Made by a program: the position numbers and the translations under genes. DNA of 64,000 nt from NCBI GenBank assembly GCA_950097015.1, contig CATNEN010000008.1:1364001-1428000 (forward strand), read 5' to 3'. Below the pieces are notes generated by a model. It saw only the letters and a program-made list of their open reading frames with translations. It searched no databases and was not told the DNA's origin. Below are positions 3,928 to 50,210 of the stretch, one piece after another. Position 1 is the stretch's first letter, and each line of letters begins with the position of its first letter. This stretch comes from Macrostomum hystrix (taxonomy: Eukaryota; Animalia; Platyhelminthes).

Positions 3928-4540
3928 AGATATTTATGGCCATCTCATTGATACATTTCGGCTTAAAAATGTGTCATTCAACTACAAGCTGGTATTTTTT
4001 CTAACATAATTTAAGCAGTCACTGGCAATCATCGTCCCATTTCGTTTTCGGCTTAACAAACTCTGAAAAGCTAGTTTTTGGTCGAAATTTGTGCAGTAGT
4101 ATGCATATGACGATTACATAATCATCGCTCGCTGCTTTTTAATGAAGAATTGAGAAACCGAGCAAGCTAAACGCGATATAGTCTAATACGAGTTTGCTTT
4201 TGTCGTTGGATGCGTGGGAGCATTTGATTGGGAGAGAAAATAAGAGAGAAGAGAGAAGAGAGAGCGAGTTTGAGTTGCATATACTCAAGAGTATGAAAGT
4301 TCGTGTGCTTTTCATTTTCACAGAACTGCCGCTTTCGCCGTTGGTGCTGTGTGTGGCCATACTGTCGTGCGTGTTTATGATGTAATCAACACTTTTGTTA
4401 GAAGTGAGAAACACAGAGAGCGCGATTGTTGGGTGAGAGATTTGGTCTAGATCTCATGCAAGTATTTTTTCCAGATCTTTATTTTTATTAAAAATTCTTA
4501 TCGCAGATCTTCATTTATTATATGAATTATTATATTGGGT

Positions 4541-5021: not shown

Positions 5022-6115
5022 AGAGCCTTACAGAGGTACCAAACGTAGTTAATAAGTCATCCCGATGCGCGTACATTACTTCGTCCAAATTTCGCGCAAT
5101 ATTTTTACGGCTGGCTAGTTTTTAACTCATAACTTATTGGCGTTATGAGTTCAGACATTTTTTGTACCGTTATTGTGGAGTAGATTTCATGAACAGTCTC
5201 AGAGACTACATAAAATTTCAGCTGTTTGCAAATTGCTTTGTTACATTAAGCATTAAAAAATGGTTTGCCTTCTTTTTTGGAATTTTAGAATTTATATTTG
5301 TTACATTTTGTTACAATAAAATAAAATTGCGCAGACCAGAAAATATATAGGAGCTATGCTAAAAATTTAATATATTCACACGCCCTCGAGGCTGCTAAGG
5401 GCCTCTCATCAGTCATTGGCTGACTGACTAGCCAATAGGAGAAGGCCTAGAGAGTGGTCATAAAGTCCTAAGCCGTGTGTGTTGGCCAGCGAGAGAAATC
5501 CTGACACACAATTTAGGCACCTAATAGTGCTGAGATTTCTTCACTGCTTGGCCTAGGTGACGTATAATGTAGAGAGAGTTATATTTGCTATATAGGTCAT
5601 CAATTTTAATCGTTGAATAAGAAATCACTGCAAAGTCTGCATCGACTGCTGTTCTTTCGCAATAAGCCACTTTTTTTAGGTAAGGTTTGGGGCATGAATT
5701 TTTTAATCAACTCAAATGATTTGTGGTTCTCGATGGTCGTGATTGATTGGGCAGTAATATTCTGGCATTTCCCACACCATTTTTTGCCAATTGCCTAAAT
5801 CCTAAGTGTAAATAATTGATAGACAGTCAGTAGCAGCTAAATATCCAGTGAAAATATTCCCATATCTCTAGCAAGATCTATAAGGGAGATTCATTTTTAA
5901 CCATCGTTCTTTAGACGCGGACTTTCTGTGAGTCAGGGATCAGATCCCTATTTTGTTCTCCAATTACTAAATTAGCTTTCTGCTTTTGTATGAATTTTTT
6001 ATGTTTTATTTTTCCCTTCTAACCGAAAGTCTTGTGTATACTAGATAAATGAAATATCTATGAAATGAAATAAACCTTTTTAACAATTTTTTTGGACATA
6101 AGTGAAGTTTTTTTA

Positions 6116-6979
6116 GTCCTTGGCCAGCTCAGTCCTAGAAAAGTGAGTTTGATTTAGTCAGCACTCGGGTTTACCGTAGACAATAGTAGAGAAATGATAT
6201 CGATTTAGTCAAGTCCCGCGTTTTTAAACAGTTCCATGACTTGATTTTAGTCAAACGTGAATTTTATTTAGTCATCATGGCGGCAGCTGTAGGCATTCGC
6301 AGAGTTACAATCTATGAGCAGGACCGGCGAAGACTCATCGACGCCTTTTTGGCAATGTCGATTGGCAGCAACTAGCGAGACAGCTGAACATTCCACGTCA
6401 GCCTGCCAGAAATGTTATCGTTAAATACGAACAAAGTGGACGCGTTCCGGCATTGAGATAAGGTGGAAATAAGCCAAAAGCTATAACTGAAGCTATGCTC
6501 GACAGCCCTGTTGAATTTGTTGGTGAAACACCCACCATGACGCTCAATGACATGCGGCAGCTAGGCGACAGGAACGCTGCAAACGCACTTGGCATCAATC
6601 TACAAGAACACCGCGCCCGCATTCTTGAGCGCGAACATGAGTCGAGTATGGCAGCTGTCACACAGCCTCACTGCGAAGCCTGGCATCGTGAGAGCCTTCG
6701 GTACATAACCCGCTGCATTGCCATGGAAGACATTGTTGATTAAATTGAAAAGGGGAAGTGTCGTGACATAAAGTTTTTGGTTTTCGTTGTTCTTGTTTAA
6801 GCTTTCGGCTCATGGCTATAACGAATAAATAAAATTCACTTTGACCTAATAAAATATACAAAAAAACTGATTTAGAGGGACTTGACTAAATCGATATCAT
6901 TTCTTTACTATTGTCTACGGTAAACCCCGAGTGCTGACTAAATCAAACTCACTTTTCTAGGACTGAGCTGGCCAGGGAC
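6116..6979 (+). mobile_element. Internally deleted IS630/Tc1-mariner-type DNA transposon with about 100-bp TIRs
   Basis: TIRs gtcc(t/c)tggccagctcagtcctagaaaagtgagtttgatttagtcagcactc...gatttagtcaagtccc at 6116-6216 and 6877-6979, flanked by TA. Internal remnants read HTH-like RRVTIYEQDRRRLIDAF / WQQLARQLNIPR...GRVPALR*GGNKPK...VGETPTMTLNDMRQL and C-terminal HCEAWHRESLRYITRCIAMEDI. The DDE core is absent, and there is a frameshift and a stop. Confidence 0.8.
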
Positions 6980-8112
6980 TAAATAAGCTTCACTTATGTC
7001 CAAAAAAATTGTTAAAAGGTATAGTATTGGACTAGAATCTTCTGCTTTCGGGAGCAGCAGCAGCAGCAGTGAACTACAACGCACACATCCAACAATTGTG
7101 CTGCTTAATTTCTTCTCTCTTATTCAAGCAAGCAAGATTTTAGACTCCAGGATGCGGGTAAATTCAGGGCAGTGCACAATGAGCAGGCATTTCTAAAGGA
7201 TTTGTGTGTGAGGGGAATTTTCCCACTTCCATTTGCTCTTCTCATCTCATCTTTTGAACGGAATTGGAAATCTACTGGGTCCTAGTTGGAATCGCCTGTA
7301 ATATAGGAAAGAAAGAATTGCCCCACTCACCCCAGACGACTTGTCAATCTTTGAGTAGACTGATTTGGAATGCTTCTGTTCCTTCTCTCTGACCAACGGG
7401 TCTCGGTGCTCAGCACTCAATGGGACAGCATTCTAAACGCAGTAATTGTTCAGAACAGACTGACAACTGCTCCGCCCAACCACAAGATCCTAAGATCTTT
7501 TTTAAAGTGCCCATCTAAAGCCCAATTGTGTATTGACAACCTGGTGCGTTATTTAAGTGCGTTTCCAAACGCAATCGAAATCTCTCTCTTTTATTGGCGG
7601 AAAAAACTAATTGGCAGACAGAAACACTATTCCCGAGGCTTACTCAATTACCTGAGACTGAGAACCTATTGCTGCTTTAGTCAGTTAAGTGTAGATCAAT
7701 AGATCTACACTTAATATTGCACAGTTTGGTTGGCACTTCGCCGGACACCCAAAATCGCAAAGTTTGTTTGACTTTACTTAATATATCTCTCTCTTGTCCC
7801 ATTGAGGGTCCTCTATCTTCAACCGTTAGCGGCTGTGTCATCTCTTCACTCAAATAGCAGCGAAAGCCTCTATATAGACGGTTTGAATGTAGGCTAGAAA
7901 AAGTCAGAGCTCAGAGCAAACTCAAGCAATCTTTAATTAATCGACTGGACTGCTGAGTAGTCAACTCAAACTTTGAGTTTGAGTTTGAGTCTGAGTGTTT
8001 GAGTCTTTTTCTGTGCACCTAATACTTGGCTATTATAAAAAAGCGATTCTCGCAACAGTGGTGCCTTTTTTATCACATTCCATCGCAGATTTCAACGCTA
8101 AGAGGATCAAGG

Positions 8113-11100
8113 ATGTTGGTAAAAATATTCCTATTGCTTCTGCTATTTCACCTGGCCCGTTGCGCTTCACAATCCGTGATCTACCTGACCAGACAGACGA
8201 TTCGCGAAGGTAATAGCAGGGAGTTTCGGTTAGATGCTTTGTCGCTCGTCCGTCTCGATATGCCCGACGCCGTGCGAATCGGCTTCTACAAATCTGCGCC
8301 GCCATTCGCCATCGAATCCGAGAGCGTCGTTGTGCTGCACGGCCCGCTGGACCGCGAGCAGCTGTGCAAGCCGCCGCAGAGACCGTCGCCTTGCGCAGAC
8401 GAGGACGCGAGACTCGGCGTCGCGGTCGGTGGTGTCGGCAGCGGCCCAGCCTCCGACTGCTGCGTGCTGCTGCGCCTCGAAGCTCGATCGGCCGGCAGCT
8501 CCAGCGTCCGCGAGTTCAACATCCGGCTAGACATCGAAGATGTCAACGACTCGCCGCCGGTGTTCGACATGTACGCCGAGCACTCGCGCAGTTTCAGCGA
8601 GGGCGAGGGCTCGGCTGGCCAGGAGCTTCGCCTGCCGAGCGCCACGGACGCGGATAGCGTTGAAAACGGCATCCTGGAGTATCGCCTGGCGGATAAGCGG
8701 CCGAACAGCTCCGTGTTCGATAGCTACTTCAGCTTAGTCGACGCTTCCGGTTTGATGTTAAATCTCGAGCCGAAGCTGCGACTGATCCGTTCGTTGGACC
8801 GTGAGCAGGTGGCCCAGTTCTCTTTTGCCCTGCTAGCCGTCGACAGGGGCCGGTCGCAGTTGACCGGCAGTCTGTCCTTCACCGTCTTCGTCACGGACAT
8901 TAACGACCACGCGCCGGAGATCGTCAACTTGCAACCCGGCCGGCGACTTCGCATCAACGAAACGGATGGTCGGTACGGCAAACTCACCGTAGCCACTTTC
9001 GACGTGGTAGATCCTGACTTTGGCGAAAATAGTCGCGTTGCCTGCATGATCCGCTCGGCGACGGGTTTTACTACTCGAGCGGAGCGCTTCTTTGAGGTCG
9101 GCATAGCACCTGGCAGACGGCACAGCGCCTCCCCTGTGCGGTCTACAAACGGTCTCACCAAGTGGGAGCTGCGATCAATCGGACAACTGGACTACGAGGA
9201 GGTCCGCCTGTTCAGCTTCAGCATCGTGGCCAGCGATAGCGGCTCTCCTCGCCTCTCCAGCAGCGTCTCAATGACCGTCGAGCTCATCAACATCGACGAC
9301 CATCCGATGCAGATCAGTTTCCGCAGCCACGGCGGCCAAAAGCAACGCGTCGAAGTCCTGGAAAATCAGGCGCCCGGCGTCAACGTGGCCTCTGTTGAGG
9401 TCCGTGATCGAGACATTGAGCAGCCGTCCGAATACAGACGCATTGAGTGTCGACTGGGCCACACAAGCCAGCAGTACTTTTGCTTGGAGGAGAAGCCGCT
9501 CATCGAAATGCGGGAATTCCGTCTGCGCACAACTGTGACGTTCGACCGCGAGTTGCATGCAGTCTACCAGGTGTTTGTCAACTGCCGCGACATGGACTCG
9601 AGCGCCACCGCCACCGCAACTCTAGAAGTCATTGTTGGCGACCTTAACGACAATCCAGCGCTGCTCAGCTCCGCCGCATATCGCGGCCGTGTCGAAGAAA
9701 ACTGCCAACGAAGAACTCTTGTTGCCATGGAGACTCAAATCGATGCTAAAGACTCTGACACCTACCCGAACAATCAGATTCTTTATCGAATCGTCAGTGG
9801 CGATGGTCAGGAGCCCCTGCCATTCAGCATCAGCGCAAAGGGCGAGCTGTACACCGAAGCCGATCTAGACTACGAGCGGCGCAGGTCCTACACCTTCAAC
9901 GTGACGGCCTACAATCAGAACAACGAGAGCCAATCTAGCACCGCCGAGGTTCGCATTGACGTCGTCGACATGAATGACAATCCGCCAGTAATAGTCGGCC
10001 ATGATATTGGTTATCGGTTCTCAGTGCTGGAGGAAGCCGCACCACTTAGCGTCGGCTTCATCAACGCAACCGACGAAGACACTCAGCCGGAGAATCGACT
10101 GTTGAAGTTCCGCATCTTGTCGCCAGGCGACCGACAGTACGGCCAGCCTCCGCCGGGATTTTTCTACACGCCGGAAACACAGAAGTACTTTACCATTGAC
10201 CAGCGCACCGGCGAGCTCCGGGTTCTGTCTCGCATCGACCGGGAGACGCATCCGCATTTTCAATTCTGCGTACTCGTTGAAAATCAGCGACCACTGCAGC
10301 CGGCGCCGAGGCTCGGCCAGCTGGTTCAACAGCAGGGAACTGTCTCGCCATCCGTCACTACTGTCTATGTGCAGGTGTGTCTGCACTAGGGACTTCTTTA
10401 TCAATTATGGGAGTATTTTTGGTCTAGTCTCCTTGGTTGCAAGCAGTAGCACCTGGCCCATACCGTGTTATAATCGCTGATCATTTTCGTACCCTCAACA
10501 GGTGATCAACGTCAACGACCATCCGCCCCGGCTGTGCCGACAGACCTCGGCCGATTCGCCTCACTCTCCGTCATCCGCGGCTCGCTCGTCAGCCTCCTGC
10601 TCGGAGCCGCTGGCACCGATCACGATCCACTTCGGCGAGTCTGTCGGCATCGCCGTCGGCCACGCCGTCCGCGAGCCCAAGTGCGTCGTCTTCCCCTACG
10701 AGGTGCGCGACGCAGACGACGATCAACCGACCCTGCCAGCTGAGTTCACTCCAAGGCTGGAGAACCTCACTGAACTGGTGGAGGGTCGCTTGGTGCAGGC
10801 GCCGGAGGTCGAATTCAGCCTCGAAGGTCCGCAGACGCTCTGCCTGCGCCGGCTGCCCGTGTCGCAGCTGGAGCGTCAGGAGTTTCGCATGCGGCTCCGA
10901 CTTGAAGACGCCCGATCGCCGGGGCACACCCGCAGCTACGAGTGCCGGGCTCTGATTGTTCGCCTGCGCCAGCCGCCCCCGCCGCCACCGGGCGCGACGG
11001 AGCCGGAGGGCGGCCGACGAAATGGCGCTGCGGATCAGTTCGCCGAGGCGGGAGCGGCAGCCGACAGGCGCCACTTTGTCATCGTGGTGTCGCTGGTCAC

Positions 11101-13045: not shown

Positions 13046-13552
13046 AATGACAATAGTAATAATACTTATAGAATGTACGTTAGTAGTTAAATTAAATTGC
13101 TGGTTCAATTTTTCAAAACATTTGTTAAACTTGTACTCGTGTTTAGGCTAAATCGAATATGCGACTAAAATAAGCATAAGAAATGCAACAACAGTGTGAC
13201 CGGAAAGTAAAAAGCTTTCAAAAGGCTTAAAAGCTGATTAAGGACCTAGCAGCTTATATTTAGTATGCAGTCACTAATGAAGGTAAGCTAGAGTATGACT
13301 CACGAACTACTGTAGTTTGTCAAATGGAGCGAAACTTTGTTCAAAGCAGATTAATATGAGCTCAAGTAGCACATCCCACCCAATGCGTGACTGCTGCGGG
13401 GGTGAAGCGTCCGCTTATCAACTTTATAGCATAGTATCCATCCATACTGTGCTACACTATTTAGTAGAGTATGAGTCGCCTACATTGTATGTTTAGTGGG
13501 CCTAATTGAGAATAACAATCAGAGACGACCGCGGGCCGGATTGGCATAGAAG

Positions 13553-15053
13553 AGATGAGACAGGGGAGAGATGAGACAGGGGAGAGATGAGACAGGGGAG
13601 AGATGAGACAGGGGAGAGTTGAGACACGGGAGAGATGAGACAGGGGAGAGATGAGACAGGGGAGAGTTGAGACACGGGAGAGATGAAACAGGGGAGAGAT
13701 ATAACAGGGGATAGTTAAGACAGGGGAGAGATGAGACAGGGGAGAGATGAGACAGGGGATAGTTGAGACAGGGGATAGTTGAGACAGGGGAGAGATGAAA
13801 CAGGGGATAGTTGAGACAGGGGAGAGATGAGACAGGGGAGAGATGAGACAGGGGAGAGATGAGACAGGGGAGAGATGAGACAGGGGATAGTTGAGACAGG
13901 GGATAGTTGAGACAGGGGAGAGATGAAACAGGGGATAGTTAAGACAGGGGAGAGATGAGACAGGGGAGAGATGAGACAGGGGATAGTTGAGACAGGGGAG
14001 AGATGAGACAGGGGAGAGATGAGACAGGGGATAGTTGAGACAGGGGATAGTTGAGACAGGGGAGAGATGAAACAGGGGATAGTTGAGACAGGGGAGAGAT
14101 GAGACAGGGGAGAGATGAGACAGGGGAGAGATGAGACAGGGGAGAGATGAGACAGGGGATAGTTGAGACAGGGGATAGTTGAGACAGGGGAGAGATGAAA
14201 CAGGGGATAGTTGAGACAGGGGAGAGATGAGACAGGGGATAGTTGAGACAGGGGAGAGATGAGACAGGGGAGAGATGAGACAGGGGAGAGATGAGACAGG
14301 GGATAGTTGAGACAGGGGAGAGATGAGACAAGGGAGAGATGAGACAGGGGATAGTTGAGACAGGGGATAGTTGAGACAGGGGAGAGATGAGACAAGGGAG
14401 AGATGAAACAGGGGATAGTTGAGACAGGGGAGAGATGAGACAGGGGATAGTTGAGACAGGGGAGAGATGAGACAGGGGAGAGATGAGATAGGGAAAGAGA
14501 TGAGACAGGGGATAGTTGAGACAGGGGATAGTTGAGACAGGGGAGAGATGAGACAGGGGATAGTTGAGACAGGGGAGAGATGAGACAGGGGAGAGATGAG
14601 ACAGGGGAGAGATGAGACAGGGGATAGTTGAGACAGGGGAGAGATGAGACAAGGGAGAGATGAAACAGGGGATAGTTGAGACAGGGGAGAGATGAGACAG
14701 GGGATAGTTGAGACAGGGGAGAGATGAGACAGGGGAGAGATGAGACAGGGGAGAGATGAGACAGGGGATAGTTGAGACAGGGGAGAGATGAGACAAGGGA
14801 GAGATGAGACAGGGGAGAGATGAGACAGGGGAGAGATGAGACAGGGGATAGTTGAGACAGGGGAGAGATGAGACAGGGGATAGTTGAGACAGGGGAGAGA
14901 TGAGACAGGGGAGAGATGAGACAGGGGAGAGATGAAACAGGGGATAGTTGAGACAGGGGAGAGATGAAACAGGGGATAGTTGAGACAGGGGAGAGTTGAG
15001 ACAGGGGAGAGATGAGACAGGGGAGAGATGAGACAGGGGAGAGATGAGACAGG
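13553..15053. repeat. 16-bp minisatellite
   Basis: Mixed units gagatgagacagggga and tagttgagacagggga. Confidence 0.97.
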
Positions 15054-46016: not shown

Positions 46017-48269
46017 ATGTCTTTTAAATTGCTTCCCAAGTCAACTGAGGAGTTTTCTGACAACAAGTTTTGGGAAGGCTTTTTTAAAACACGCGGAAGC
46101 AAAGCATTTGAATGGTATGTCCACTAACTGTGTTTGTTGATGTTTTATAATATAGCTGTATTAGAATTATGTCATACAAGCTGCCTTGTCAATTTAAAAC
46201 TTAGGTATGGCGAGTACCAAGACATGGTGGACCTGTGGGCTCAGTATGTTAAATCTGGCGATCGAGTGCTAAACATTGGCTGTGGCAATTCTAATCTAGG
46301 TGCCGAACTACACGATCGACAGGGCTGCGATGTGCTATGCATTGACACCAGCGACACAGTTGTGCAGCAAATGACACAAAAGCACAACAAGCGGCCCCGC
46401 CTAACCTATCGGGTTATGGATGCTGCTAACCTAGCTGGCCTCGATGACGCTAGCTTCGCATGTGCCGTTGATAAAGGCACATTAGATGCGCTAATGTCTT
46501 CGTCTGGCTCGGCGGAAGGCGTAGTCGACAATATGCTTGCTGAAGTGCATCGGATACTGCGTATTGGCGGTCGGCATCTGATTGTTAGTTTGTGCCAAAG
46601 ACAGGTTGTAGATAAACTGTTGCAGCACATCTCCGCTAGGTTAGTGTGCTTTTTTATTGTTATTCATCTAATCTATGAGCGTAGCTGATATGTGCAATAA
46701 TGAAATTTCTGGTCCGTGTTACTGACCACCCATCTAGTGGCGCTGCTGATTCATTTAACCAGAACTGTGTGTTGGTTGATTTACAATGTATTTGTAAATG
46801 ATTTTCCCTCCCTTTAATTTTAAACAATTTCTTAACCTAATTTCGTTGCTACGCACCCTTGTTTTAGGCCGTGGATAGCGCGAATTCACCAAGCCACCGC
46901 CGCCTCGGCTTCAGACTCGTCAGGCTTTCCTCTGCCAGTATTCTTCATCGCTTTAACAAAACTGCGACCGCCTGCTGCGGCTGCCTCATCCGCATCTTCC
47001 ATTGTACAGGTCCAAGACGCTTATTCAACAGGTCCACCAGAACGGCTGGATTCCATTTCCAGTTTGGCTGAATGGATTCGTCAAGTTCAGCTCACCACAT
47101 ATTCACTTTCTAGGCCTACTAAAAGTGACACAGCCACGCAATTCTCTTACACGTGCGGTCGCACGGGCCTGCCAACATTCACCTGCCATCTGTTGACGCA
47201 TCCAACTGCTCCTTCTCGACGTCGCTCCGGCTACGCCGTCTTCATCGAACCATTGAACTCCGCCTCTTCATCTGGAATGTCGCCTGAGAAGCGCAGAGAA
47301 CTATTAGACAGTCAGCCGAATCTGCGTCGATTATTGTTTGTTCGCCTTCATCCATGGCTCTATTATCAATCTGATAGCGCGTTGCAGGCCTCATTATCTC
47401 GTTTAGTGATGGCATTCGCGCCTCGGCCAGACATACCAGAATCTGATGTGCCCTTCTTAAGCACTGGCAAATCGGCTTATCCATATCAAACTGTTGCTAG
47501 CGAGGCTGGCTATGTTGTTGAACAGTCTAGCGACCAAAACGATTTTCGACTTCTTAAACATGACAGTGACTTGTCGCCATTGTTATGCCGAGCCAATAAA
47601 GCTCTGTTAAAATCGGCTGACGACAATTCAAATATCGCCGACATTGTCGCTGAAGCTGGCGACAATCCGCTTGGTCGCCTACTTGACGCCCTGATCAATG
47701 ATAGGGCCACCTCCGCTTTTATTAATTGGCCATGGGATCTTGACTGGCTACTAACTTCAGAGCGGCGTCGAGCCGATCGTCCTTCACCCTCGCTTCATTG
47801 TTTGCCCACATCACCAGCTATTAGTTTGCTATTGAAGCATTTCAACATGACCTGGTGCAATCAGTTGCCTAGTCGTGAGGATTCCGCTTGTTTTAAACTT
47901 GTAGCCGTATTCCCACCGGCTGAGTCTCTGGCCGCGTACTCTAGTGCTATGTCATCTGAGTCTATCTTCAGTCTCGCAGATATTGTTGACAGCAACTGCG
48001 GCTGCTTGTTGTTTGCAACGCGTCTGTTTGATAAGAAACCGGTCGTTGCAGGCGTCAATGCCCGTGCCATCGATTTGTTGCGTCAATCCGGTAAATTTGT
48101 TAGCGTCTGTTGCGCAACATTTTTCGAATCGGACAGCGCAGACCATGACGACGCGGAAAATGAACGAAGCCGTTGCTGGATTGCATTCGCGTCTGCAAGT
48201 GCGGAGTCTGCTGATCGTGCCATTAGCTTAATCTCTAATCTTCCTGGCGTTCAGTTTATCAGCAAATGA
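46017..48269 (+). CDS. METTL13: METTL13/eEF1A-KNMT-like methyltransferase; exons 46017-46114, 46205-46639, 46868-48269 (644 aa)
   Basis: MSFKLLPKSTEEFSDNKFWEGFFKTRGSKAFEW|YGEY...VLNIGCGNS...VDKGTLDAL is the METTL13 N-terminal class I MTase domain. The linker has PLPVFFIALTKLR, YAVFIEP, RRLLFVRLH and VPFLS. Both introns are phase 2 GT-AG. Confidence 0.9.
46694..46772 (+). ncRNA. SNORD18: U18/SNORD18-like box C/D snoRNA copy 1 (degenerate boxes), in METTL13 intron 2
   Basis: Box C variant ATAATGA at 46697, guide TGGTCCGTGTTA, D' CTGA, ccac/gtgg stem, C' TGCTGA, then accagaa and box D mutated to CTGT. Confidence 0.6.
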
Positions 48270-48497
48270 TGAATCCTTGGATGTTAAAGCCAAGGGCATA
48301 ATAACCGAATGCATAGTTATTTTTTTAATGGTTTAGTTAGATAGAAGACAACTTTTTAATATAAAATACACATCCAGATGGCATTTAAAGAATCTTGTTT
48401 TGCCAAGTTTTCAAACCTGTAGACGGTCGTTTGTTTTTTTACATATATGTGCCAAAAAAAATATTACAGTAGATCCTAGAGCAGATAATTAATATTT

Positions 48498-48576
48498 GCA
48501 ATGATGATATTTCTGGTCCGTGTTACTTACCACCCATTATAGTGGTGCTGCTGATAATCATACCAGAACTGATTGC
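48498..48576 (+). ncRNA. SNORD18: U18-like box C/D snoRNA copy 2
   Basis: Terminal stem gcaa/ttgc, box C ATGATGA at 48501, guide TGGTCCGTGTTA, D' degenerate CTTA, box D CTGA at 48569. Confidence 0.75.
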
Positions 48577-48625
48577 GACTATTTTAACATGTTTATATAG
48601 TTCAATTATGATTTATATTAAAGAG

Positions 48626-48696
48626 ATGATGAAATATCTGGTCCGTGTTTCTGATTACCCACTCTGCGGTAATGCTGATAATCATACCAGAACTGA
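48626..48696 (+). ncRNA. SNORD18: U18-like box C/D snoRNA copy 3
   Basis: ATGATGA...TGGTCCGTGTTT-CTGA(D')-ttacc/ggtaa stem-TGCTGA(C')...accagaa-CTGA(D). The guide is complementary to LSU rRNA AAACACGGACCA. Confidence 0.88.
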
Positions 48697-48737
48697 AACT
48701 TGTTAATCTTTGTAAATCTTATGTTATACAATTGGCT

Positions 48738-48808
48738 ATGATGAGATTTCTGGTCCGTGTTTCTGATTACCCACTCTGCGGTAATGCTGATAATCATACC
48801 AGAACTGA
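48738..48808 (+). ncRNA. SNORD18: U18-like box C/D snoRNA copy 4
   Basis: Intact C, D', C', D boxes and the same guide. Lies 112 bp after copy 3. Confidence 0.88.
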
Positions 48809-48849
48809 AACTTGTTAATCTTTGTAAATCTTATGTTATACAATTGGCT

Positions 48850-48920
48850 ATGATGAGATTTCTGGTCCGTGTTTCTGATTACCCACTCTGCGGTAATGCT
48901 GATAATCATACCAGAACTGA
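48850..48920 (+). ncRNA. SNORD18: U18-like box C/D snoRNA copy 5
   Basis: Identical to copy 4 and 112 bp later. Flanking tggc/gcca terminal stem. Confidence 0.9.
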
Positions 48921-49038
48921 GTGCCAGTCTTTCTTCTGTTATGCTAACTTGTATTATAAGGTCCCCTAGTTTGGCAGTCTAGACCCACGCCGCTCCCACG
49001 CAATAATTAAACTTTGCATTTCAGCTTAAAGTGTCAGC

Positions 49039-50210
49039 ATGACCAACACCAAGGGTCTGCGCCGCGGTACGCGGTACATGTTCTCCCGGGAGTTCCGCCG
49101 GCGCGGTGTCATCCCGCTGTCAACTTACATGCGCGTTTTCAAGCGCGGCGACATTGTTGACATCAAGGGTAATGGCAGCATTCAGAAGGGCTTGCCATTC
49201 AAGACCTATCACGGCAAAACTGGCCGCGTGTACAATGTGACGCCTCACGCTGTCGGTGTGATTGTTAACAAACAGGTGAGCTGATATTTCTATAAATCCT
49301 TTATGTAATACAAGTACGATTGGCTATGATGAGATTTCTGGTCCGTGTTTCTGATTACCCACTCTATGCGGTAATGCTGATAGTCATATCAGAACTGAGT
49401 GCCAGTCTTTCTTGCAGCCTTACAACTTGAAGCTGTCCGTGCAATAATCAAATAGACCGGAATGGAGTGTTCGACTTAGGGTAGGGAAAATAGGCTAGAG
49501 TGTAATAAAAACGGCAAAGGTTGAGAAACAGACAACGAAACTGTAAAGGGTTAAAGCGACACAAGTTACAAAGGAACTAGATAGGAGAACATGAAAATCG
49601 CTACTGTGTCCTAACTCCTATAAGTTCTATCAGGCGATCCGGCGAGGCCACATTAATTTTAGGCGCAGCCGCGGAGAGAAGGCTTGGGGGCTTGTCGTGC
49701 AATTTAAGTCCTTGAGGGCTGATGTACACACCTGTGTGAGCGTATGCCTGCGTACCGAATCTGTGTGCGTGTGTGCTCAGGAGTCAGTGAAACAGGCAGA
49801 AACGGGTTCAGTGTCACCAAATGATTTGCGATTGCCCGCAGCCCTCCTGCAATCATTGTTATTATTATTTGCAGTTCACGATAGAATTGTGAGCGGTTGC
49901 GCTAGCAATAGTTCAATTGGATCTTAGGCTCAATCCTCATTCCTTCCCCCCTCTCCCCAAACAGGTGCGCAATCGCATCATTCCCAAGCGCATCAACGTC
50001 CGCATCGAGCACGTGAATCCCAGCAAGTGCCGATTGGACTTCCTGCGCCGCGTCAAGGAGAACGACGTTAAGCGCCGCGAAGCCAAGGCCGCCGGCAAGA
50101 AGATCTGTCTGAAGCGACGCCCGCAGGGACCCCGGCGTGCCACCATTGTGAAGACTAAGAAGAACAAGCCCCAGCTGTTGGAGCCGCTGCCGTACGAGTT
50201 GATTGCTTAA
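49039..50210 (+). CDS. RPL21: 60S ribosomal protein L21 (eL21); exons 49039-49275 and 49965-50210 (160 aa)
   Basis: [17 protein letters not shown]...GDIVDIKG...[19 protein letters not shown]...VNKQ|[17 protein letters not shown]...[10 protein letters not shown]. Phase-0 intron 49276-49964. AATAAA at 50311. Confidence 0.98.
49326..49398 (+). ncRNA. SNORD18: U18-like box C/D snoRNA copy 6, in the RPL21 coding intron
   Basis: ATGATGA at 49326, guide TGGTCCGTGTTT-CTGA, box D CTGA at 49395, tggc/gcca stem. Starts about 50 nt after the donor. Confidence 0.9.

Follow-up and report, generated by a model that had tools for sequence, protein, structure and literature searches.

Six copies of one snoRNA cassette, spread over two adjacent genes of the flatworm Macrostomum hystrix, raise the question of which RNA they encode, which of them are likely to be active and which of the two genes serves as host. 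The copies lie in a 64,000-nt stretch of DNA (assembly GCA_950097015.1, contig CATNEN010000008.1, positions 1,364,001 to 1,428,000 of the forward strand), hereafter called the window, in whose numbering coordinates are given unless another molecule is named. An initial annotation had read them as a U18/SNORD18 cluster that changed host and was amplified in this lineage, shared between an eEF1A methyltransferase gene and a ribosomal protein gene. From the analysis presented here, the six copies are probably the U18 (SNORD18-type) box C/D snoRNA genes of this flatworm, with the array among them likely to be co-transcribed with RPL21 and processed. They are a new, unannotated member of the known U18 family; the U18 RNA itself is ordinary, and only its placement in a tandem array before RPL21, common to M. 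lignano, is unusual.

Six box C/D cassettes and their neighbouring genes

The window contains six box C/D cassettes of 71-73 nt, whose box C motifs start at 46697, 48501, 48626, 48738, 48850 and 49326, as initially annotated. The gene placements first proposed also hold: copy 1 lies in intron 2 (46640-46867) of a METTL13-like gene, copies 2-5 between the stop codon of that gene (48267-48269) and the ATG of RPL21 (49039), and copy 6 in the RPL21 intron. The features of the locus are:

46017-46114, 46205-46639 and 46868-48269, + strand: exons of the METTL13-like gene (methyltransferase Pfam matches; exon mapping)
46697-46768, + strand: copy 1, type A-like, in METTL13-like intron 2, 57 nt past the donor and 99 nt short of the acceptor
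48501-48572, + strand: copy 2, type A, array unit 1 (SNORD18 score 27.9 bits)
48626-48696, + strand: copy 3, type B, array unit, 112-nt period (32.5 bits)
48738-48808, + strand: copy 4, type B, array unit (32.1 bits)
48850-48920, + strand: copy 5, type B, final array unit (32.8 bits; 6-bp terminal stem)
49019-49024, + strand: splice acceptor TTTCAG, 14 nt upstream of the RPL21 ATG
49039-49275 and 49965-50210, + strand: exons 1 and 2 of RPL21 (eL21), separated by an intron at 49276-49964 (Pfam PF01157, E 2.5e-36)
49326-49398, + strand: copy 6, type B, in the RPL21 intron, 50 nt past the donor (33.1 bits; every box intact)

An 18-nt guide-plus-D' pattern, allowing at most one mismatch, had six matches in the 220 Mb genome, all of them these cassettes, and the reversed control pattern had 1+1 matches in the same genome. 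A covariance model built from the copies (R1) recovered the same six places and no others.

The exons of both genes were searched separately and not as joined protein models. Matches to Pfam Methyltransf_11/25/31 mark an N-terminal class I methyltransferase domain in the METTL13-like gene, and its exon 3 is 59% identical to the M. lignano protein P0001. The best named relatives of P0001 are METTL13 proteins (eEF1A lysine and N-terminal methyltransferases), which align over 56-67% of the query with 32-40% identity; among the matches listed in the METTL13 homologue search, M. lignano was the only named flatworm. The 401-aa C-terminal piece gave no Pfam match, and none therefore to the C-terminal spermidine-synthase-like domain PF01564, which is also not listed for the M. 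lignano orthologue P0001; the alignment to a vertebrate METTL13 ends near residue 414. For RPL21, a tblastn alignment with M. lignano eL21 (P0121) continues across the intron.

Architecture of the RNA and its assignment to U18

In each cassette, box C is followed by 18 nt of spacer, the end of which is the guide GGUCCGUGUUU, and then by box D'. A short hairpin leads from there to a degenerate box C' (UGCUGA), and box D comes last; a 7-bp helix (UUCUGGU/ACCAGAA) links the segment following box C to the segment preceding box D. Box C is ATGATGA and box D is CTGA in five of the six copies, copy 1 departing from RUGAUGA/CUGA. The generic cassette initially described fits most copies, but not copy 1 or copy 2, the latter with D' = CTTA and a CACC/GGTG hairpin between D' and C', and in both copies the nucleotide adjoining D' is A, not T. 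As had been noted, all six copies have a T at position -5 from D'.

Support for the helices came from several sides: 85.7% of cells were paired compared with 19-50% in slid controls, two-sided changes were found in 4/5 pairs of the terminal stem, and hairpin pair 38-56 alternates between UA and CG. Minimum-energy structures contained these three helices for most of the copies that were folded; the z-scores were modest, -0.5 to -2.5 (copy 1 apart), and copy 2, with a 7-bp terminal stem, reached -2.5. Copies 1, 3 and 4 have a weak terminal helix, whereas one of 5-7 bp is formed by copies 2, 5 and 6 and by those of M. lignano.

At Rfam gathering thresholds no match was obtained in the whole window, and SNORD18 (RF00093, threshold 41 bits) appears only in E-value mode. 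There it is the best Rfam family at 6/6 copies, with scores of 24.5-33.1 bits that fall below the 41-bit cut-off (29.9-34.5 bits for the M. lignano copies). The Rfam comparison therefore bears out the initial assignment to U18 as regards the family, although no copy reaches the gathering score. The guide is identical to the Rfam SNORD18 consensus over GGUCCGUGUUUCUGA. In a whole-genome SNORD18 search the top ranks were taken by five of the six copies, copy 1 falling below one unrelated box C/D candidate. Two other weak matches (contigs C7 and C37) were rejected, neither carrying the guide: one is a different box C/D candidate, the other a chance partial match.

A predicted target in LSU rRNA

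The D' guide pairs perfectly with positions 839-850 of the LSU rRNA encoded in the same genome, forming 12 contiguous Watson-Crick pairs (11 in type A) that begin at position 1, adjoining D'. The target, AAACACGGACCA, is a single site in the LSU rRNA and was found in 18 rDNA copies, so that the complementary site that the initial annotation had anticipated in the species' own rRNA is present and unique. By the fifth-nucleotide rule, guide position 5 is a U facing LSU A843, and this predicted target is the equivalent of yeast 25S A649, in agreement with the adenosine originally named. In yeast, U18 (SNR18) guides 25S Am649 and Cm650 (PMC5699541). A target scan that tolerates G-U pairs does not discriminate, as shuffled guides reach equal duplex length, and the assignment therefore relies on the site being unique, conserved and matched by Watson-Crick pairs throughout.

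A second guide, upstream of box D, was considered and rejected; its best match was 9 bp, which 37 of 100 shuffles equalled. The spacer upstream of box D is unconserved between species except for the helix arm ACCAGAA. The snoRNA is accordingly predicted to carry a single guide at D', with no second target.

Conservation in Macrostomum lignano

In all four M. lignano RPL21 loci fetched, the gene is immediately preceded by a U18 array, the copy numbers being 4, 9, at least 46 and at least 52. The two loci that reach further upstream have the order METTL13-like gene, array, RPL21 as in the window, which bears out the synteny with a related genome that the initial annotation had proposed to look for, and they keep a first spacing of 125 nt, equal to the distance between the starts of copies 2 and 3, followed by a period of 112/113 nt. 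The other two have no METTL13 match upstream, where their sequence ends in a gap or at a contig end. Between the two species the snoRNA is 86-89% identical and the spacers are at shuffled level; 22 of 39 fourfold degenerate sites of RPL21 are identical.

No U18 copy was found in the METTL13-like intron or the RPL21 introns of the M. lignano loci fetched. As judged by comparing the two species, the conserved site is the tandem array, consisting of one type A and then type B copies, before an acceptor 14 nt upstream of the RPL21 ATG, and the two intronic copies (1 and 6) are specific to M. hystrix. The proposed host switch and amplification stand in so far as the location differs from RPL4 and EFB1 and the amplification is real, but a cluster shared between two host genes overstates the case, because M. 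lignano conserves the upstream array and neither of its introns holds a copy. Copy 6, which is marked by a TA insertion, is 95% identical to copy 5, with common flanks of about 11 nt on the 5' and 15 nt on the 3' side, and appears to be a recent DNA-level duplicate of it. Beyond the genus, no U18 was found within 5-10 kb of RPL21 in Schistosoma mansoni, Schistocephalus solidus or Cichlidogyrus casuarinus.

Which copies are likely to be active

Tandem repeats can expand neutrally, as the M. lignano array of at least 52 identical units suggests, and together with the Rfam scores under threshold this would fit a non-functional repeat, or snoRNA pseudogenes, resembling U18 by descent or chance only. 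Such a reading is very improbable in view of an RNA that is highly identical between species next to spacers at shuffled level, of boxes, guide and helices that are kept with compensatory changes, and of the fact that the genome, in whose rRNA the target is retained, contains no other U18-like sequences. Whether all six copies are active, which would make the METTL13-like gene a true second U18 host beside RPL21, turns on copy 1. Despite a divergence of about 18% from copy 2, copy 1 has a complete guide and has retained D', C' and the internal helix of 7 bp, and it lies at a workable distance (99 nt) from the acceptor. However, its box C reads ATAATGA and its box D CTGT. In the kink-turn bound by Snu13, the first sheared G.A pair is formed by the G at position 3 of box C and the A at position 4 of box D; in copy 1 these are replaced by A and U, respectively. 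Because both partners of this key pair are mutated, copy 1 is probably inactive, a decayed duplicate. It also folds without a proper terminal stem and no better than shuffled sequences (z-score +0.28), its scores are 80.1 bits with R1 (the lowest of the six) and 24.5 bits with SNORD18, and the M. lignano intron contains no copy. A second host in the METTL13-like gene is hence an unlikely reading.

Possible routes of production

We infer that U18 is expressed from this locus, and the layout suggests how. The array would most likely be transcribed together with RPL21 and removed as the RNA upstream of the RPL21 acceptor, either as an outron after spliced-leader (SL) trans-splicing or as a 5' intron. 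Cleavage between units, followed by exonucleases that trim back as far as the bound proteins, would release the individual snoRNAs, and copy 6 would be made from the RPL21 intron in the ordinary way. Assembled with fibrillarin into a snoRNP, the RNA would base-pair through its guide to LSU rRNA 839-850 and so target A843 for 2'-O-methylation. Where one excised RNA contains several snoRNAs, an endonuclease has to separate them, and animals do not usually take this route.

The acceptor before RPL21 (TTTCAG) fits the motif [T/C]TNCAG of SL trans-splice acceptors in M. lignano (PMC8629364), and trans-splicing is common in the genus Macrostomum (PMC8629364; PMC10468722). The same acceptor, at the same 14-nt distance from the ATG, was found in the three M. 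lignano loci read (L015, L016 and L025). Between the METTL13-like stop codon and the RPL21 acceptor, the window contains no GT[AG]AG donor, a motif from which real donors at this locus also deviate. In M. lignano a GTGAG donor lies upstream of the array, so that a cis-spliced intron is equally possible there. A model in which the outron of trans-spliced RPL21 is the U18 host, an endonuclease separates the units, and copy number, both within and between species, is free to rise from 4 to more than 50 is offered as a tentative possibility. A multi-exon non-coding host with one snoRNA per intron was rejected for the 112/113-nt units, because their spacers of 37-41 nt contain no acceptor-plus-donor pair; it is possible for the 154-nt units of M. 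lignano, which carry AAAG followed by GTAGGTAAAT.

Two other arrangements would account for the same gene order. The array could be a polycistronic snoRNA transcription unit of its own that merely adjoins RPL21; tandem arrays of this kind are well known from plants, yeast clusters and trypanosomatids, and the 112-nt unit spacing leaves no room for exons. This is decidedly improbable, since in the window and in 4/4 M. lignano loci the array directly adjoins the RPL21 acceptor, despite copy numbers of 4 to at least 52, the spacers and the region upstream of the array lack conservation that would mark a promoter, and no terminator-like feature occurs between the last copy and the acceptor, 79-104 nt downstream (104 nt from the end of box D in copy 5). 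Alternatively, the METTL13-like gene and RPL21 could be joined in one polycistronic precursor driven from the METTL13 promoter, with the array as intercistronic spacer that is freed by METTL13 3' end formation and SL trans-splicing of RPL21. The two genes lie on the same strand and in an order conserved in two species, SL-type acceptors are located just before the ATG of each, and no AATAAA/ATTAAA occurs from the METTL13 stop codon to the array in the window. The gap of 770 nt, much of which is tandem repeat, also fits the rule used for operon calls in M. lignano, a gap below 1 kb after subtraction of repeats (PMC8629364). On the other side, a ribosomal protein gene would be expected to require much stronger expression than one for a methyltransferase, the interval from the METTL13 stop codon to the array contains a TATAAAA (at about 48358), and in M. 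lignano AATAAA/ATTAAA signals follow soon after the METTL13 stop codon. The second pair of M. lignano loci, having no METTL13 match upstream, weighs weakly in the same direction given that the sequence ends there at a gap or contig end. Taken together, an operon seems unlikely.

Relation to known U18 genes and snoRNA arrays

The main text of the M. hystrix genome paper (PMC10468722) makes no mention of snoRNA, Rfam or non-coding RNA, and RPL21, L21 and snoRNA are unmentioned in the gene-level trans-splicing data of its supplements; a literature search on Macrostomum snoRNAs and on snoRNAs in outrons returned nothing relevant. The finding fills a missing annotation for genes that the Rfam threshold misses. 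It also yields a precise, testable prediction, Am at LSU A843, and a conserved type A-then-type B architecture before RPL21 whose copy numbers differ greatly in M. lignano. If the array were matured from a trans-spliced outron, Macrostomum would be convenient for studying the coupling of snoRNP assembly to trans-splicing, as opposed to cis-splicing, because RNAi and transgenesis exist for M. lignano. Otherwise, the locus would be a further example of snoRNA genes moving from host gene to host gene, which is well known.

Vertebrate SNORD18/U18 is present as three isoforms in introns of human RPL4 (PMC3035437). The flatworm RNA has the same guide core (GGUCCGUGUUU followed by CUGA), the same conserved LSU target and one functional guide at D', as well as a helix between the segments after box C and before box D (UCCAC/GUGGA in the Rfam consensus, UUCUGGU/ACCAGAA in the flatworm), and in both cases multiple isoforms are tied to a ribosomal protein gene. 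In contrast to the vertebrate RNA, it scores below the Rfam cut-off, has a shorter spacer from box C to the guide and carries an 18-nt hairpin between D' and C', an interval of about 7 nt in vertebrates; its host is RPL21 and not RPL4, and the copies are mostly arranged head-to-tail upstream of the coding exons, not one per intron. Yeast U18 shares the target sequence and, by the fifth-nucleotide rule, the same A. Its gene, in the EFB1 intron, is single-copy, unlike the multi-copy flatworm gene.

Head-to-tail box C/D copies with short spacers and variable number are also generally known from plant and trypanosomatid clusters and from the mammalian SNORD115/116 repeats. Plant and trypanosomatid clusters usually mix different snoRNAs, and in SNORD115/116 every unit has an intron and exon of its own and lacks an rRNA target, whereas the flatworm array repeats one housekeeping rRNA guide before an animal ribosomal protein gene.

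Six copies of a U18-like cassette at the METTL13-like gene and RPL21

The repeat search of the window returned one family of six in-register copies with box C starts at 46697, 48501, 48626, 48738, 48850 and 49326 (start-to-start spacings 1804, 125, 112, 112 and 476 nt). These are the positions proposed in the initial annotation, and direct reading of the sequence gave the same ones. In the whole genome (220,453,370 bases, 42 contigs) an 18-nt guide-plus-D' pattern with at most one mismatch occurred at six places only, those of copies 1-6, and the reversed control gave 1 match per strand. A covariance model made from the copies (R1), with scoring limited to the best candidates from a first look, likewise matched the six copies only.

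The exons of the two neighbouring genes were searched singly. The identity of RPL21 is certain (PF01157, E 2.5e-36). For exon 3 of the METTL13-like gene the sole database relative was an M. lignano protein, P0001 (59% identity), whose best named relatives are METTL13 proteins (eEF1A lysine and N-terminal methyltransferases; 32-40% identity, first 56-67% of the query). The C-terminal methyltransferase domain PF01564 was not detected in window exon 3 (46868-48269) or in P0001; the alignment of the Macrostomum METTL13 orthologue to vertebrate METTL13 ends at about residue 414. In tblastn with M. lignano proteins the query coordinates were continuous across 46640-46867 and 49276-49964, which identifies both gaps as true introns and corroborates the intronic placement claimed for copy 1 (METTL13-like intron 2) and copy 6 (RPL21). 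A perfect 6-bp hairpin (48275-48295; CCTTGG, 9 nt, CCAAGG) directly follows the METTL13 stop codon, the context of which is AAATGATGA.

Anatomy and fold of the RNA

Alignments of the copies gave the following elements, in order.

Elements of the cassette
Box C: ATGATGA, first element
Spacer after box C: 18 nt, final part GGTCCGTGTTT
Box D': CTGA, after GGTCCGTGTTT
Hairpin between D' and C': 18-20 nt
Box C': TGCTGA, degenerate
Segment from C' to box D: 14-15 nt, last letters ACCAGAA
Box D: CTGA, final element

The general order of the cassette first described thus holds; copies 1 and 2 depart from it in their boxes (copy 1, C = ATAATGA and D = CTGT; copy 2, D' = CTTA) and in the base adjoining D', which is A in both. 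In M. lignano the C'-to-D segment measures 14-16 nt in most copies and 12 nt in those of type A, one of two copy classes. TTCTGGT after box C is exactly complementary to ACCAGAA before box D; the equivalent helix of the Rfam SNORD18 consensus is UCCAC/GUGGA. Across 14 copies from the two species, 85.7% of cells were paired versus 19-50% with the partners slid, the terminal stem showed both-sided changes in four of its five pairs, and hairpin pair 38-56 switched between UA and CG. For most of the copies that were folded, the minimum-energy structure contained all three helices; z-scores were modest (-0.5 to -2.5). Because the terminal stem covaries, the 3' boundary of the RNA is placed at the last CTGA; TGCTGA, which the Rfam model frequently aligned as box D, is ruled out in that role by the same stem.

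The rRNA target

The rDNA unit of M. hystrix (L017) was annotated with Rfam.

Features of L017
247-4003, minus: LSU rRNA
4367-4520, minus: 5.8S rRNA
5243-7055, minus: SSU rRNA
9713-9875 (G000:C15:21712-21874), minus: U1 snRNA gene, upstream of the SSU rRNA gene on the same strand

The LSU rRNA has a single match to AAACACGGACCA, at 839-850, and the SSU rRNA of L017 has none; 18 rDNA copies of the genome carry the longer site TGAAACACGGACCAAGG unaltered. The proposed U18 guide and its LSU target were borne out: the duplex comprises 12 contiguous Watson-Crick pairs from the D'-adjacent nucleotide (11 in copies 1 and 2), and the fifth guide position, U, faces A843. The yeast counterpart is 25S Am649; there U18 is the guide for both this position and Cm650 (PMC5699541). 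Upstream of box D the best second guide reached 9 bp, equalled by 37 of 100 shuffles, and this stretch diverges between species apart from the helix arm; the flatworm RNA, like vertebrate U18, thus has one guide only. Separately, the U1 snRNA gene within the 11.6-kb rDNA repeat unit is full-length (151.7 bits, cut-off 69.5).

Family assignment

At curated thresholds Rfam reported nothing in the window. In E-value mode SNORD18 (RF00093) ranked first among families at each of the six copies, supporting the family named initially, but every score (24.5-33.1 bits) fell below the cut-off of 41. In the whole-genome SNORD18 search five copies took the top places and copy 1 was seventh. On guide identity, target and architecture the RNA is classed as a U18 orthologue, sub-threshold Rfam scores notwithstanding. 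A weak match on contig C37 was rejected as a chance partial match, and one on C7 as a different box C/D candidate. The latter (G000:C7:3301455-3301512, minus; about 1056-1113 of stretch L031) reads GCTGT-ATGATGT ... CTGA ... CTGA-CAGC and carries a guide unrelated to U18.

It is well known that snoRNAs move among host genes and are amplified locally. The array RNA is a previously unannotated member of a known family, no new kind of system, although it is arranged in a way unusual for an animal. In human, the three U18 isoforms lie in introns of RPL4 (PMC3035437), and RPL21 hosts other snoRNAs, SNORD102 and SNORA27 (PMC7072173).

Conservation in M. lignano

The order METTL13-like gene, U18 array, RPL21 is kept on both M. 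lignano contigs encoding P0001, with 9 and 4 U18 copies (all M. lignano copy numbers are those of the deposited assembly). In both species the first array copy is of type A, with a CACC/GGTG hairpin, and the second starts 125 nt after it; type B copies follow at a period of 112 nt (window) or 113 nt (M. lignano). Between the species the type B RNAs show 86-89% identity, while spacer identity is at the shuffled level (pre-array 0.61 versus 0.60, between copies 0.56 versus 0.58, post-array 0.53 versus 0.52) and 22 of 39 RPL21 four-fold sites are identical, a pattern that marks the RNA itself as the object of selection. In M. lignano, neither the METTL13 nor the RPL21 introns gave an R1 match. 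In Schistosoma mansoni, Schistocephalus solidus and Cichlidogyrus casuarinus the 5-10 kb around RPL21 contained no U18.

Two more M. lignano RPL21 loci, encoding the eL21 protein P0121 (L024/L025 and L029/L030; NIVC01001318.1 and NIVC01001317.1), carry 46 or more and 52 or more identical units of 154-nt period directly 5' of an RPL21 paralogue; the arrays stop at an assembly gap or contig end. Every 154-nt unit spacer has a donor-like AAAG|GTAGGTAAAT, absent from the 112/113-nt units.

Proposed expression route of the array

In the window and the three M. lignano loci read, an acceptor (TTTCAG or TTCCAG, then CTTAA) lies 79-104 nt past the last copy, and from there the distance to the RPL21 ATG is exactly 14 nt.

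Acceptor-to-ATG sites
Window: 49019-49041
L015 (M. lignano RPL21 locus): 13614-13636
L016 (M. lignano RPL21 locus): 13052-13074
L025 (M. lignano RPL21 locus): 5981-6003

This acceptor matches the spliced-leader (SL) trans-splice motif [T/C]TNCAG of M. lignano, a species that trans-splices about 30% of its genes (PMC8629364); the figure for M. hystrix is 10-20% (PMC10468722). Given a flatworm spliced leader with AUG at its 3' end, the 14-nt spacing would create an upstream ORF of 6 codons, its UGA overlapping the AUG of RPL21 (AUGA).

The spacers of the 112/113-nt units (37-41 nt) are too short for an exon flanked by its two splice sites, and one excised RNA must therefore contain several snoRNAs. 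We infer that the array is expressed inside RNA excised upstream of the RPL21 acceptor, either as an outron, the RNA upstream of a trans-splice acceptor, or as a 5' intron. In the window, the stretch from the METTL13 stop to the acceptor has no GT[AG]AG donor, but M. lignano has one, and real donors of these genes deviate from the motif too, so that either an outron or a 5' intron would fit. Possibly the array is instead transcribed together with METTL13 as an operon, or forms an independent polycistronic unit; its processing route is worth testing.

The intronic copies

In the box C/D kink-turn, Snu13 needs the first sheared G.A pair, which is made by box C G3 and box D A4. Copy 1, 82% identical to copy 2 with a similar 5' flank, has changed both (G3 to A, A4 to U), has no terminal stem and folds no better than shuffles; with these changes it is probably inactive or nearly so. 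Copy 6 retains every box and is 95% identical to copy 5, with common 5' (about 11 nt) and 3' (15 nt) flanks, pointing to a recent DNA-level duplication; the shared flanks rule out a retrocopy.
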